The position numbers were made by a program, and so were the translations under genes. 64,000 nt of DNA from the IMG/VR virus record IMGVR_UViG_3300020084_000003, positions 220,777 to 284,776 of that record. One strand, given 5' to 3'. The notes beneath the pieces were generated by a model. That model saw only the letters and a program-made list of their open reading frames with translations. It was not told the origin of the DNA and searched no databases. Below, piece by piece: positions 2,368 to 61,205 of the stretch (the stretch's first letter is position 1; the number at the start of each line of letters is the position of its first letter).

Positions 2368-3093
2368 ATGACAACTTATTACGTATATAGAATTACCAAT
2401 AATAAACCGAATAGCATTCCAAAATACTACTACGGTTTCAGAAAATGCAACACAAGCCCATCATTAGATACAAAATATATGGGAAGTTCTAAATATCTCA
2501 AACAAGACATAAAGAACATTGGCATAGAATATTTCTCAAAGAAAATAATAAAAACATTTAATAATAAAGAATCTGCGATTGACTACGAAATCATGTTGCA
2601 TCTAAAATTTAATGTTGATAAAAACGTCATGTTTTATAACAGATGTAAAGCGAATAAATTTGGGTATAAATGCACAGGAGATGTTCTTAAAGGTAAAAGT
2701 TATACCGACATACACGGCGAAGAAAAAGCCATTAAATTAAAAGAAGAAAGATCAAGAAAAATTAAAGAAATCTCTTCTAACCGTAATTATATAGGCGATA
2801 AAAATCCAAATTATGGCAATAAATGGAGTGAAGCCATGAAAGAAAAAATGTCAGAAATGAAATCGGGTCAAAATAATCCTATATATGGCAAAATCATAAT
2901 AAATAACGGTATAAAAGAAAAAAGAATATCTAAAGATTCAAATATTCCAGAAGATTATGTTATAGGCAGAATCAGAAAAGATGTTTCTGGTATAGTAGAA
3001 GATTTTTTGAATTCTGGTCTTAGTAGAAAAGAATTTTCATTATTAAGAAACATAAACTACAACACTCTAAAGAAATATTTAAAGGGGGTTTAA
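2368..3093 (+). CDS. GIY-YIG homing endonuclease (Seg-like, NUMOD3-type repeats, C-terminal HTH)
   Basis: YYVYRITN..YYYG-R..YMGSS..E..N..FYN; NPNYG/NPIYG repeats; free-standing and opposite in strand to its neighbours. Confidence 0.85.
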   Translation: MTTYYVYRITNNKPNSIPKYYYGFRKCNTSPSLDTKYMGSSKYLKQDIKNIGIEYFSKKIIKTFNNKESAIDYEIMLHLKFNVDKNVMFYNRCKANKFGYKCTGDVLKGKSYTDIHGEEKAIKLKEERSRKIKEISSNRNYIGDKNPNYGNKWSEAMKEKMSEMKSGQNNPIYGKIIINNGIKEKRISKDSNIPEDYVIGRIRKDVSGIVEDFLNSGLSRKEFSLLRNINYNTLKKYLKGV

Positions 3094-24488: not shown

Positions 24489-27400
24489 TTAAGCTATTCT
24501 TACTACTAATTCGAATGGACCCGGATTAGAAGCATCAAATGCGGCTTGAGTATTAACTGTGGTTATTATTATAGATTGCCCCGCTGGACCGGTGTTTCCA
24601 ACTGGACCTTGCGGGCCAGTGTTACCTACCGGACCTTGAATACCTTGTGGTCCAGTATTTCCTTGCGGCCCTTGTGGACCTTGGATGCCCTGTGGGCCGG
24701 TGTTGCCAACTCGACCTTGAGGGCCTATCGGACCACGTTCGCCTACTGGTGAAAACGCAAGAATATCCCAATTAGTTGAAATATTTTCAAATGGTGAAGA
24801 ATTTCCATCTGTTTGTGAAATCCAAACAAAAGATGCAACTGATCCGTTAAGAGGATCGCCATCACCATCTAGTATTTGGTAAACACCATCTCCTTCTGTA
24901 TAAACAGAATTTGGATTCCACAATCCTCTCCAATTTAAACCGGTTCCTACATCACCTTTTGGACCAACTGGACCTTGTGAGCCTTGCGGACCTATCGGGC
25001 CTTGTGGACCCTCTGGGCCTGTTGGGCCTACTGGACCAATATCACCTTGTGGACCTTGTTCGCCCACTGGTGAAAATACAAGAATGTCCCAATCAATACC
25101 CATGTTTTCAAAAGGATTGCTATTGCCGGGTTCTTCTGGTAGCCAGATATAAGATATAACTGAACCATTCAACGGTGAACCAGAACTTATATTTATTGTT
25201 TGATATACAACATCGTTTTTATTATATATCTCACTAGATAGCCATTCACCCTTCCATTCAATTCCAACTTCACCTTGTGGGCCTACTGGACCTTGCGGGC
25301 CAATCGGGCCTTGTGGTCCCGCAACACCTTGCGGTCCAGTATTTCCTTGTGGACCCTGAACACCTTGTGGTCCTGTTGGACCTGTCGGGCCAACATCACC
25401 AACATCACCTTTTTCGCCTCTTTGGCCTTGGACACCTTGGATACCTTGTGGGCCTTGTGGTCCAGCAGGGCCAACCGGACCTGTATCGCCAATGTCACCC
25501 TTTTCGCCTCTTGGGCCTTGTGGTCCAGTTTCTCCAACTAAACCTTGTGGTCCGGTTTCACCTTGTGGTCCAGTAAGTCCAATTGGACCTTGAGGGCCGG
25601 TTTCGCCTTGTGGACCTTGGATACCTTGTGGACCTGTGTTACCGACCGGACCTTGAGGGCCAACCGGACCCTCTGGACCTTGGACGCCTTGTGGACCTGT
25701 GTTACCTGTCGGACCTACTGGACCTTGAATACCTTGTGGTCCAGTATTTCCAGTTAAACCTATTGGACCTTGGATACCTTGTGGACCTGTGTTACCAACT
25801 GGACCTTGAATACCCTGAATACCTTGTGGTCCGGTATTTCCGACCGGGCCTTGTGGACCTTGGATACCTTGTGGACCAGTGTTGCCAACCGGACCTTGCG
25901 GGCCAGCTATACCTTGTGGACCAGTGTTACCGACCGGACCTTGAGGACCAGTTGGGCCTTGTGGCCCCTGTGGACCTTGGATACCTTGGATACCATTTTC
26001 TCCCTGAATACCTTGCGGCCCTTGTGGGCCAACTGGACCTTGCGGACCTACTGGACCCGCTGGACCTTGTTCACCCACTGGTGAAAATACAAGAATATCC
26101 CAATTTACGGAAATATTTTCAGATGGTATGGAGTTTCCAGATGTATTTGCAGTCCAAACAAAAGATGCAACAGAACCATTTAGAGCATTATTGCTTGAGC
26201 TTAATATTTGATAAACAGCGTCATCTTTTTCATATACAGAATTAGAACTCCACAATCCTCTCCAATTTATACCTTTAGGACCAACTGGACCAATAGGGCC
26301 AACTAAACCACGCGGGCCAACTGGACCTTGCGGACCTTGAATGTTTCCAACGTTATTCCATGAATCATCATTAATTGAGTAAACCCACAAGTTTCCGTCA
26401 ATTATGTATGAATCTCCATTTTCAGATGTTAATGGCAGATCATCTTCTGATTCGAGCGCACCAATAATATTTACGCCGGTTCCATCGTCACCTTTTTCGC
26501 CAATATCACCTTTTGGACCAACCGGACCTTGCGGACCTACTGGACCTTGAATACCTTGTGGACCTGTGTTACCTGTCGGGCCAACTGGACCTTGAATGCC
26601 TTGTGGTCCGGTGTTGCCTTGTGGCCCTTGTGGTCCTATCGGGCCACGCTCACCTGTTGGACCTTGCGGCCCTTCCGGTCCCTGAATACCTTGTGGGCCA
26701 GTATTTCCAACCGGTCCTTGAGGGCCAGTTTCACCTTGTGGTCCGGTGTTGCCTTGTGGCCCTTGTGGACCGGTATTACCAACTGGACCTTGCGGACCTT
26801 GAATACCCTGAATACCTTGTGGACCGGTGTTACCGGTTGGACCTGTAGCGCCTCTATTTGCCAAAATAGACCATGTAGAGGTAGTAGTTGGAACAACGTT
26901 AATTGCAGTATTTACTATTAAGATATAAGAAGTATTTGAAGAGTAAACAACATCATTTCTTGAATATGTTGCAGCAGCGTTATAGTTTCCTCTCCAAGTT
27001 ATACCAACTGGACCGGTATTACCAACTGGACCTTGCGGACCTGTGTCACCGACCGGGCCTTGTGGTCCGGTTTCACCCTGAATACCTTGCGGTCCAGTAT
27101 TTCCAGTTAAACCTTGAATACCCTGCGGGCCTTGAATACCTTGTGGGCCTGTGTTACCAATATCGCCTTTTGGACCAACCGGACCTTGCGGACCTACTGG
27201 ACCTTGAATACCTTGCGGTCCAGTATTTCCAGTTAAACCTTGTGGGCCTTGTGGTCCGGTTTCGCCTCTCTCGCCTCTTTGACCTTGCGGACCTGTTGGA
27301 CCTACCGGGCCTTGTGGACCTTGGATACCTTGTGGACCTTCATCACCCACATCACCTTTTGGTCCAACTGGACCAATTGGACCTTGAATACCTTGTGGGC

Positions 27401-41047: not shown

Positions 41048-41123
41048 TGGTCCCTGCGGGTTGAATCGAACAACCCCTACGTGGTCCACAGCCACGTGTG
41101 CTAACCGCTATCACTACACAGGG
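41048..41123 (-). tRNA. tRNA-His(GTG), A73 and no G-1
   Basis: CGTGG-CTGTGGA-CCACG; acceptor CCCTGTG/CGCAGGG-A-CCA, preceded by T. Confidence 0.9.
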
Positions 41124-43036: not shown

Positions 43037-43723
43037 ATGAAATACATAGTATACCAGATAACAAACAATGTCAACCACAAAATATATATCGGAGTTCACA
43101 AAACTCACAATGAGCATGACACTTACTATGGTAGTGGAAATGCAATCAAAAAAGCAATCACAAAATATGGAAAGCACAATTTCACTAAGGATATTTTATT
43201 CACTTTTGATAATCCTAAAGAGGCTTTCGAAAAAGAAGCTGAATTGGTGACTAAAGAATTTGTCAAGTCAAATAAAAACTATAATCTAAAAATAGGTGGG
43301 TGGCATCCAAACGACATTGAAAATTCATACAAAATGATATCCGAAACCAAATCAGGAGTTGCTACGACCAAACATACTGAGGATAGCAAAGAAAAGATAC
43401 GAAAATATAGAAAATCTGTTGTCACCATAAATGATGGTAATGTTGAAAAACGCCATCCTAAAGATTTAGATATACCTAAAGGTTGGAAATTAGGTAGACT
43501 TGATAAAAATAAACAACAAAGAACCCCAAGAACTTATCTTTACATTTCAGAAGAAGGTGAAACACAAAGAATAACCAACTTAAAGAAATGGTGTGACGAA
43601 AATAATCTTAATTATTATAATATAAATGACTGCATTGACAAAGGTATTATTAGACCATCTACTAATAAACAGTCACCTACCAGAATTTTCATGATAGGCA
43701 AAGAAATTAAACGTATTGATTAA
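43037..43723 (+). CDS. GIY-YIG homing endonuclease
   Basis: YIVYQITN..KIYIGVH..YYGSG..E..YN. Confidence 0.88.
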   Translation: MKYIVYQITNNVNHKIYIGVHKTHNEHDTYYGSGNAIKKAITKYGKHNFTKDILFTFDNPKEAFEKEAELVTKEFVKSNKNYNLKIGGWHPNDIENSYKMISETKSGVATTKHTEDSKEKIRKYRKSVVTINDGNVEKRHPKDLDIPKGWKLGRLDKNKQQRTPRTYLYISEEGETQRITNLKKWCDENNLNYYNINDCIDKGIIRPSTNKQSPTRIFMIGKEIKRID

Positions 43724-45749: not shown

Positions 45750-45835
45750 TGGCGGTTCAGGCAGGACTTGAACCTGCACCCTTTTCGGACACCGGGCTTT
45801 TTACCCGGCGATGGCTACCATTTCATCACCGAACC
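45750..45835 (-). tRNA. class II tRNA-like gene with a non-canonical loop (UAAAAAG)
   Basis: Leu-like D arm, variable arm, T arm, G73-CCA; CCGGG-TAAAAAG-CCCGG. Confidence 0.55.
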
Positions 45836-52885: not shown

Positions 52886-53488
52886 TTAGAATTTGTAGAT
52901 AGCGCGAACACCAACAGTTTCTACGTCAGCAGTAAAGCCTTCGGCACCTTCAAACACGTTCTGATTAAAACCAGAATTGCCTAGATCGGTGCGGCTGTAT
53001 TTACCACCAACAACTAGATTGTCGGTAACTGCATAGTCAATACCTACGCCATATGTTGAAGAATCTTCTCCGTCAACTTTGGCATATCCTGCGGAAATGT
53101 ATGGCAGGACGCGATTGAATGCGTAACCGGCTTGTGCTTCTGCGGTATAAGTCTCAGCACCACCACTTTCAAATAGGCTTTCAGTTTTTTGATAACCTAG
53201 CTCACCACCCAGAACAAAGTTGTTCTCGAATTGATGACGATAACCAGCTACAACACCATAGGTAGTTGCGGTATCATCGCGGCTCTCAAACTCAAAATCT
53301 TCTGCAAAATCTAGATCAACAGCGGTGCGGGCGACTGTGCCACCAACATATGCACCTGACCATGAAAATTGTGGTGCGGTCACAACGGCAACTGGTTCAA
53401 CTTCAACCACCGAAGAAGTGTATCCACCAGCGACAGCGCCGGTAGCTAGAAAAGCTGAAAGACCAGCAGCAATAACAAATTTGTTCAT
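52886..53488 (-). CDS. outer-membrane beta-barrel protein (Omp25/Omp31/RopB-like)
   Basis: Signal peptide, WSGAYVGG, GYRHQF..FVLGGE, PYISAGYA, C-terminal YKF. Confidence 0.85.
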   Translation of the reverse strand: MNKFVIAAGLSAFLATGAVAGGYTSSVVEVEPVAVVTAPQFSWSGAYVGGTVARTAVDLDFAEDFEFESRDDTATTYGVVAGYRHQFENNFVLGGELGYQKTESLFESGGAETYTAEAQAGYAFNRVLPYISAGYAKVDGEDSSTYGVGIDYAVTDNLVVGGKYSRTDLGNSGFNQNVFEGAEGFTADVETVGVRAIYKF

Positions 53489-56533: not shown

Positions 56534-56610
56534 TGGTTGCGGTGGGTTGGATTTGCACCAACGACCTCTGGCATATGAAACCAGCAAGCTAACTACTGCT
56601 CTACCCCGCA
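56534..56610 (-). tRNA. tRNA-fMet-like (CAT)
   Basis: TGCGGGG-TAGAGCAG 5' end, CTGGT-TTCATAT-GCCAG, T loop TGCAAAT, bulged acceptor; lacks the three G-C initiator pairs. Confidence 0.75.
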
Positions 56611-57239: not shown

Positions 57240-57380
57240 ATTACCTTTTAACAATCTTCTCGATTGAAGTGGTTAACTGCACCGCAATCTATGATTCGCT
57301 TATACCATTTATATAATAATATTGATCCGTCGAACAATATTGACACAAACCGTCGAATGTGCTAGGTATTGATAATCATA

Positions 57381-57451
57381 TGCTCAATTGGATTCGAACC
57401 AATGTCTCCTACTTCTCACGTAGGCGCATTCTTCCAGTATGCGATCTTGCA
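57381..57451 (-). pseudogene. degenerate class I tRNA with GAG anticodon
   Basis: CCTAC-GTGAGAA-GTAGG, D and T arms present, acceptor mismatched, no CCA. Confidence 0.5.
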
Positions 57452-57471: not shown

Positions 57472-57557
57472 TGGAAGTCCCGGTCGGACTTGAACCGACA
57501 AACCGTTAGGCGCTGTCTTATGAGGACAGAGTGTTTAACCAATTCCACCACGGGACC
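57472..57557 (-). tRNA. class II (Leu-like body) tRNA with CAT anticodon, U73
   Basis: GTG-GAATTGGTTAAA-CAC, CTGTC-CTCATAA-GACAG, variable arm GCC-TAAC-GGT, CCA. Confidence 0.8.
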
Positions 57558-61087: not shown

Positions 61088-61205
61088 CTCGGGCGGCAGG
61101 GTTCGAACCTGCGACCACCTGATTACTTTTGAAGCTTCCCGAATCGAACGGGTATTTACCTTTAGCTTCCACAGTCAGGCGCTCTACCAACTGAGCTACA
61201 CCCGA
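61088..61205 (-). tRNA. tRNA-Asn(GTT) interrupted by a 45-nt insert in the anticodon
   Basis: CCTGA-CTGT|45 nt|TAA-TCAGG; 118 nt = 73 + 45; G73; CCA not encoded. Confidence 0.8.

Follow-up and report, generated by a model that had tools for sequence, protein, structure and literature searches.

A guanosine at position -1 (G-1) is a near-universal identity mark of tRNA-His, and canonical histidyl-tRNA synthetase (HisRS) needs the -1 nucleotide along with its 5' phosphate. Histidine tRNAs without G-1 are exceptions that reveal how recognition between synthetase and tRNA can be rewired; those of the RRCH clade, and the divergent HisRS that goes with them, were reportedly the subject of work by Wang et al. 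in 2007. The clade, made up of Rhodobacteraceae, Rhizobiales, Caulobacterales and Hyphomonadaceae, has tRNA-His without G-1 and with A73 (PMC3937112, PMC3064791). Its conserved set of features was given as A73, a G1-U72 pair and a 9-nt D loop with U20a (Yuan et al., 2011; PMC3064791). Canonical HisRS is strongly dependent on the -1 nucleotide, and the Caulobacter enzyme relies mainly on the anticodon and tolerates the loss of G-1 (PMC3064791). For the Caulobacter enzyme U72 is a main identity element, with a 91-fold loss on U72C, while A73C costs only 3-fold and an added G-1 only 5-fold (PMC3064791).

Phages also encode tRNA-His without G-1. The (8/4) tRNA-His of alphaproteobacterial phages was described by Mukai et al., 2017, who read the feature as alphaproteobacterial (PMC5389517), a precedent for taking the absence of G-1 together with A73 as a marker of phage host. 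A second relevant system involves Thg1-like proteins (TLPs). Bacillus thuringiensis encodes G-1 in its tRNA-His gene, and post-transcriptional addition was judged 'not necessarily required' there (PMC3061083). For the addition of G-1 by its TLP, A73 is a roughly 50-fold poorer partner than C73; the enzyme also places U-1 on A73 tRNA-His, and it complements yeast thg1-delta when the only tRNA-His present is the A73 form (PMC3061083). In Bacillus phage Bc431v3 an annotated 'tRNA-His guanylyltransferase' was said only to be an enzyme that 'may modify' tRNAs (PMC3601020).

Results

A tRNA-His gene without G-1 in a large phage tRNA array

The window, by which we mean the whole 64-kb stretch of DNA that was analysed, is the final part of a 284,776-bp IMG/VR virus record (G000; CheckV 100%, 38% GC) whose metagenome source contig is Ga0194110_10000009. 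The phage is a jumbo phage, assigned to the T4 superfamily on PHROG matches to a T4-type large terminase, tail sheath, portal and rIIA. Lake-water metagenomes hold its DNA, with 32-96% of sampled words present in each of seven runs from seven studies; the matching runs are DNA only. The genome carries an array of about 34 tRNA genes, 32 of them called by ARAGORN, and 28 of these 32 lie inside the window, all on the minus strand. All but one of the ARAGORN calls (31/32) end in an encoded CCA. Encoding CCA is a bacterial and not a eukaryotic habit, eukaryotic tRNA genes being devoid of it. The set is nearly complete and includes a single tRNA-His (ARAGORN). A search of the phage genome for HisRS (PF13393) found none, so charging of this tRNA must use the host enzyme. 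The features considered here are as follows.

41048-41123, minus strand: tRNA-His(GUG) gene, 76 nt (ARAGORN; Rfam tRNA model, 47.5 bits; covariation in lineage homologs)
41124, minus strand: T at position -1, no encoded G-1 (read from the sequence; t or a in lineage homologs)
41123, minus strand: C1, paired with G72 at 41052 (compared with 12 clade tRNAs and PMC3064791)
41051-41052, minus strand: G72 (41052) and discriminator A73 (41051), kept in 6/6 lineage sequences
41048-41050, minus strand: encoded 3' CCA (read from the sequence)
41087-41089, minus strand: anticodon GUG in the loop CUGUGGA (ARAGORN)
52886-53488, minus strand: OMP_b-brl outer-membrane beta-barrel gene inside the tRNA array (PF13505, 55.7 bits)

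Read in the sense of the RNA, the gene runs 5'-CCCTGTG...CGCAGGG-A-CCA with a T before C1. It forms a regular cloverleaf with a 3-bp D stem and a 5-bp T stem (ARAGORN), and its 7-bp acceptor stem, CCCUGUG/CGCAGGG, includes one U.G pair. An Infernal search of the whole record recovered the gene at G000 261827-261899 (47.5 bits, E 5e-10); a default Rfam scan left it unlisted. We used the D-arm pattern to recover homologs in IMG/VR and in metagenome contigs, which yielded one IMG/VR genome of 282,855 bp (L269, the same as G142) and five metagenome contigs, and we aligned the phage's own sequence with five distinct homolog sequences. In this lineage alignment 120/120 stem cells are paired, with compensatory double changes at 10 of the 20 pairs. 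G72, A73, C2:G71 and CCA are invariant, position 1 is C in five of the six sequences and U in the sixth, and position -1 is t or a, never G.

As the fold is kept with compensatory changes in related contigs, the gene is real and not a chance match, selected as a tRNA and without encoded G-1. An earlier note on this DNA had reported the acceptor end CGCAGGG-A-CCA with a T 5' of C1, which the ARAGORN call and a reading of the reverse complement bear out, and its identification of a tRNA-His that lacks G-1 and carries A73 is confirmed by ARAGORN, Infernal and the lineage homologs. A conserved eighth pair, U-1:A73, was ruled out by the a found at -1 in two relatives. RNase P in general favours U at -1. 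No homolog of the tRNA-His emerged when 50,697 phage records were searched by BLAST.

The acceptor top differs from that of alphaproteobacterial tRNA-His

We sampled tRNA-His from 30 alphaproteobacterial genomes, with a Celeribacter genome as the centre of the sample. Eighteen have the canonical form (g at -1, G1:C72, C73), and the other 12 lack G-1, all 12 with G1:U72, C2:G71 and A73. Together with published work (PMC3937112, PMC3064791), these 12 uphold the background on which the earlier note had built, namely that a clade of Alphaproteobacteria lacks G-1 and uses A73. BLAST with the Celeribacter tRNA-His gave matches that were not isotype-specific, and a covariance model built from 25 alphaproteobacterial tRNA-His matched all isotypes and was used solely to locate tRNA clusters.

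The phage gene shares with the RRCH type the absence of G-1, A73, C3:G70 and the GUG anticodon. Its D loop, UAGCGGUUA, ends in UUA as in the RRCH type and is 9 nt long if A13.G22 closes the stem, whereas ARAGORN draws a 3-bp stem and a longer loop; the relative L269 has one U fewer in this loop. It departs from the RRCH type in the 1:72 pair, which is C:G and not the clade's invariant G1:U72, in its D stem (GUG/CAC versus GCUC/GAGC), in its 4-nt variable loop and in being phage-encoded, unlike the cellular genes of the clade. It is equally distinct from canonical bacterial tRNA-His, which combines G-1:C73 with G1:C72 where the phage has T at -1, A73 and C1:G72. A pattern combining the His anticodon arm with G72, A73 and CCA found no true tRNA-His of this kind in 401 alphaproteobacterial genomes; two matches were rejected since ARAGORN did not call them as tRNA genes. 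The C1:G72 pair and this absence indicate that the phage gene is no copy of an RRCH host gene.

A recurrent class of phage tRNA-His

IMG/VR was scanned with a pattern for tRNA-His ending in A73-CCA, and checking the matches by ARAGORN left 53 tRNA-His. Host-like genes for RRCH (G1:U72 with A73) make up 22 of the 53, and 20 of those 22 are without G at -1. Fourteen share the arrangement described here, with a pyrimidine at position 1 paired to G72 (Y1:G72; 13 C1:G72 and one U1:G72), and all of them have A73 and no G-1. Seven have A73 despite an encoded G-1 and G1:C72, and three are canonical.

Two cultured phages of RRCH hosts belong to the same Y1:G72 class, with A73 in both: Kabachok of Brevundimonas, where the pair is C1:G72, and phiM12 of Sinorhizobium, where it is U1:G72. 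Among other cultured phages, Caulobacter phage C1 combines G1:U72 with G73, the roseophages DSS3_MAL1 and MD18 have G1:U72 and U73 on an 8-bp acceptor stem, that is, the (8/4) type, and phages CBB, XbC2 and Vibrio D69 encode G-1. Genes of the C1:G72 class and G1:U72 tRNA-His occur together on three single IMG/VR contigs, L297 and L315, where the G1:U72 gene has A73, and G183, where it has U73. To this extent the distribution accords with the earlier note. The class is also found in Bacillus phages BC-T25, Bc431v3, BMBsp2 and BM15 (Herelleviridae) and Nate (Joanripponvirinae), all with C1:G72, A73 and c or a at -1. Because these include phages of the Bacillus cereus group, the signature extends beyond phages of RRCH hosts, and the present case thus qualifies its use as a host marker. 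From these comparisons the phage tRNA-His is assigned to a phage-specific class, defined by C or U at position 1, G72, A73 and no G-1, and copies none of the host tRNA-His that were sampled.

Among described phage genes, the (8/4) type of Mukai et al. is similar in being phage-encoded, in lacking G-1, in having A73 (or, in their set, U73) and in lying in a large phage tRNA cluster. It differs in its branch: the present tRNA has a 7/5 arrangement, with no pairing possible between U8 and C65 and with a T stem, GGUUG/CAACC, of 5 bp. The tRNA-His of the Bacillus cereus-group phages matches in C1:G72, A73 and the lack of G at -1, and a TLP gene accompanies it in Bc431v3, BMBsp2, BM15 and BC-T25. 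Unlike the present gene, the Bacillus phage genes do not encode CCA and serve in a Firmicute host that has an encoded G-1, and the bodies of the two tRNAs cannot be aligned by BLAST.

The phage encodes a Thg1-like protein

The phage carries an intact frame for a TLP of 267 aa (PF04446, 97-99 bits) elsewhere in its genome, outside the window (G000 191532-192335, minus strand). The motifs RIDGK and SDE are kept, and in alignments with 4kgk and 3wbz the residues D36, D80 and E81 fall in the catalytic motifs of those proteins. Of the solved structures the best match is the B. thuringiensis TLP (4kgk, E 1.5e-21). HINNLYN is absent, CKKNFVS standing where Candida Thg1 has CHINNLYN, so the enzyme is of TLP and not of Thg1 type. 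The next large gene upstream, with one 62-aa ORF between, encodes an RNA ligase (346 aa, PF09414, KLHGTN motif), and the pair (G000 191532-193600; L001 1150-3218, minus strand) looks like a tRNA-repair module. The phage resembles the eukaryotic cytoplasmic system of tRNA-His and Thg1 in that one genome holds both a Thg1-family gene and a tRNA-His with A73 and no encoded G-1; it differs from that system in its bacterial-type TLP without HINNLYN and in the CCA encoded by its tRNA gene. By analogy with the B. thuringiensis enzyme, addition of a -1 nucleotide to the phage tRNA-His would be biochemically possible.

Annotations of Thg1-like genes exist in 162 phage records, and at least 579 IMG/VR contigs carry such a gene; the papers found on them go no further than to say that the products 'may modify' tRNAs. 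Comparing lineages that had not been chosen via the TLP gene, we found it in 4/6 lineages of the Y1:G72 class and in 0/6 complete genomes that have another A73 class (one-sided Fisher p = 0.03); few lineages were compared, and differences in genome size and ancestry confound the test. The comparison suggests a weak link between TLP and the class. A strict link with G-1-less tRNA-His was rejected: two complete genomes of the class, G125 and Bacillus phage Nate, have no TLP, and 12 of 16 large TLP-bearing IMG/VR contigs with tRNA-His have canonical G-1:C73 genes.

Several related observations concern other genomes. Three TLP-bearing contigs, G179, G197 and G201 (L367, L401 and L373), have a canonical tRNA-His and extra copies with t at -1; these copies, without G-1, have C73 in G179 and G197 and U73 in G201, and for templated addition of G-1 the copies with C73 would make ideal substrates. 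L260 and L307 each hold a tRNA-His(GUG) that ends in A73-CCA and has a mismatched acceptor top (G1.G72, A2.C71). Such 5' acceptor mismatches are mended by TLPs in mitochondria. A TLP is absent from G165, the complete contig to which L307 belongs. A cellular Rhodobacterales protein, P0069 of Pseudosulfitobacter pseudonitzschiae (390 aa), is a fusion of Thg1-like and PTH2 peptidyl-tRNA hydrolase domains and is 41% identical to the phage TLP.

Clues to the host

The beta-barrel gene inside the tRNA array has named cellular homologs in Rhodobacterales only (Paracoccus, Celeribacter, Jannaschia), at 33-42% identity. Closer homologs (52-65%) lie on short metagenome contigs, one of which (P0004, 53%) was examined and is a related phage contig. 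The 'Omp25-like' clue of the earlier note thus stands insofar as all named cellular homologs are from Rhodobacterales and is tempered by their low identity and by the closer copies on related phage contigs. The portal protein is 49.7% identical to that of Sinorhizobium phages phiM12, phiM7, phiM19 and phiN3, with the next group at 46%, and among cultured phages the roseophages give the best matches to the TLP. The phage tRNA-Tyr carries A8, as do the roseophages and also Yersinia phage Yen9-04; R8 in tRNA-Tyr has been described as an RRCH-specific trait (PMC3937112). Two other RRCH traits, U15/G48 in tRNA-Glu and C7 in tRNA-Tyr, are absent from the phage tRNAs, and since known roseophages also lack them they are uninformative on the host.

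These independent clues agree with one another and weakly favour an alphaproteobacterial host. The host inference of the earlier note, drawn from the tRNA-His, is in part sustained: the beta-barrel, the portal and A8 of tRNA-Tyr agree with it, and the missing G1:U72, the occurrence of the class in Bacillus phages and the phage's own Thg1-like enzyme weaken it. The tRNA-His plausibly fits an alphaproteobacterial host and does not by itself establish one.

Other tRNA genes of the array

A tRNA gene at 61088-61205 (minus strand; Rfam tRNA, 59 bits) is split by about 45 nt in its anticodon loop. Plain ARAGORN misses it and an intron search calls it tRNA-His, a candidate we rejected as a second tRNA-His: once the 45 nt are removed the loop is that of a tRNA-Asn (CUGUUAA, anticodon GUU), U1:A72 and G73 in the acceptor are likewise as in tRNA-Asn, and the G142 homolog is an uninterrupted tRNA-Asn. 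The phage has no other tRNA-Asn, and a search of its genome for a tRNA splicing endonuclease (PF01974) found none. The insert contains a T-arm-like hairpin, and pairing of the flanks adds 9 bp to the acceptor helix (MFE -58 kcal/mol, z -5.7). An interrupted tRNA-Val is also predicted by ARAGORN in G142.

Three tRNAs of 86-88 nt with long variable arms (45750-45835; 57472-57557, minus strand; and G000 26834-26921) have anticodons unexpected for class II, AAA ('Phe', G73), CAT ('Met', U73) and CTT ('Lys'), and may be allo-tRNA-like or mis-assigned. The initiator-like tRNA-Met at 56534-56610 (minus strand) has U1:A72 and not the bacterial C1xA72 mismatch, as does its counterpart in G142. A tRNA-Leu(gag) call at 57380-57451 (minus strand) lacks CCA and matches Rfam model positions 7-64 only; it is probably a truncated or decayed copy adjoining the gene at 57472-57557. 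Two homing-endonuclease-like genes lie on the opposite strand, at 2368-3093 and 43037-43723 (both plus), the second amid the tRNA genes; they match PHROG 314 and show DNA similarity to homing endonucleases of T4-like phages.

Discussion

We favour, with a probability of roughly 0.5, the reading that this gene encodes a phage-specific variant of G-1-less tRNA-His that is charged directly by the G-1-independent HisRS of a freshwater alphaproteobacterial host. Host RNase P would most likely cut at C1, as nothing conserved at -1 pairs with A73, to leave a 7-bp acceptor stem, A73 and the encoded CCA. The likeliest user would be a HisRS that reads the anticodon and does not need G-1, such as the divergent RRCH enzyme of a freshwater host, and G72 and A73 would be the conserved acceptor marks of its substrate. 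The two phages of RRCH hosts within the class, the three contigs with both types of tRNA-His and the host clues would argue for direct charging by such an enzyme. Against it, the phage has G72 where 12/12 clade tRNAs have U72, a position at which U72C brings a 91-fold loss (PMC3064791); the class is also conserved in Bacillus phages, the host clues are weak and U15/G48 is missing, as it also is from known roseophages.

A possible but rather unlikely alternative is that the phage TLP adds the -1 nucleotide (G, or U templated by A73) after RNase P has acted, yielding a tRNA that would suit a canonical HisRS in any host. The Y1:G72, A73 arrangement without G-1 would then be a phage-specific, host-independent design, matured by phage (or host) TLPs. 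The frame is intact and RIDGK and SDE are kept, but the protein is of the TLP type without HINNLYN. Its closest solved relative does add G-1 or U-1 to A73 tRNA-His, though its addition of G-1 opposite A73 is some 50-fold poorer than opposite C73 (PMC3061083). Such maturation would account for the class in Bacillus phages, and the C73 copies without G-1 in G179 and G197 lie on TLP-bearing contigs; however, G125 and Nate have the class without a TLP, and most TLP-bearing contigs with a tRNA-His (12/16) are canonical in that gene. The excess of TLPs in the class (4/6 versus 0/6, p = 0.03) comes from a small comparison in which genome size and ancestry are confounders, and the neighbouring RNA ligase would suit general tRNA repair.

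Somewhat less likely still, the host may lie outside the RRCH clade and its canonical HisRS may charge the tRNA inefficiently through the anticodon, offset by high copy number during infection. The phage comes from lake water, home of many non-alphaproteobacterial hosts, and Bacillus phage Nate has the class without a TLP. Canonical HisRS is, on the other hand, strongly dependent on the -1 nucleotide (PMC3064791), the strict conservation of G72 and A73 suggests specific recognition and not tolerated leakiness, and the host clues, weak as they are, all point toward Alphaproteobacteria.

That the RNA is not a histidine acceptor at all, being a decoy for host tRNA-targeting nucleases or a substrate of another synthetase, is improbable: its acceptor top is unlike that of the cellular tRNA-His examined (0/401 alphaproteobacterial genomes), and C1:G72 with A73 resembles the acceptor identity of E. 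coli tRNA-Pro and recurs in the phage's own tRNA-Pro, but the GUG loop and the cloverleaf are conserved with compensatory changes, the gene is the sole tRNA-His of a near-complete set, and the identity elements required by ProRS include G35 and G36.

The finding sets apart a phage class of tRNA-His with G72 in place of U72, found in 0/401 alphaproteobacterial genomes and yet also present in Bacillus phages. Were maturation by TLPs the true explanation, phages whose hosts are as far apart as Bacillus and Alphaproteobacteria would share a eukaryote-like tRNA-His pathway, a natural substrate and a physiological role would be assigned to bacterial TLPs, and the phage tRNA-His would be uncoupled from the idiosyncrasies of host RNase P and HisRS. 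If, as we favour, an RRCH-type HisRS charges the tRNA directly, that enzyme would tolerate G72 where it does not tolerate C72, and the identity rules for tRNA-His would be refined.
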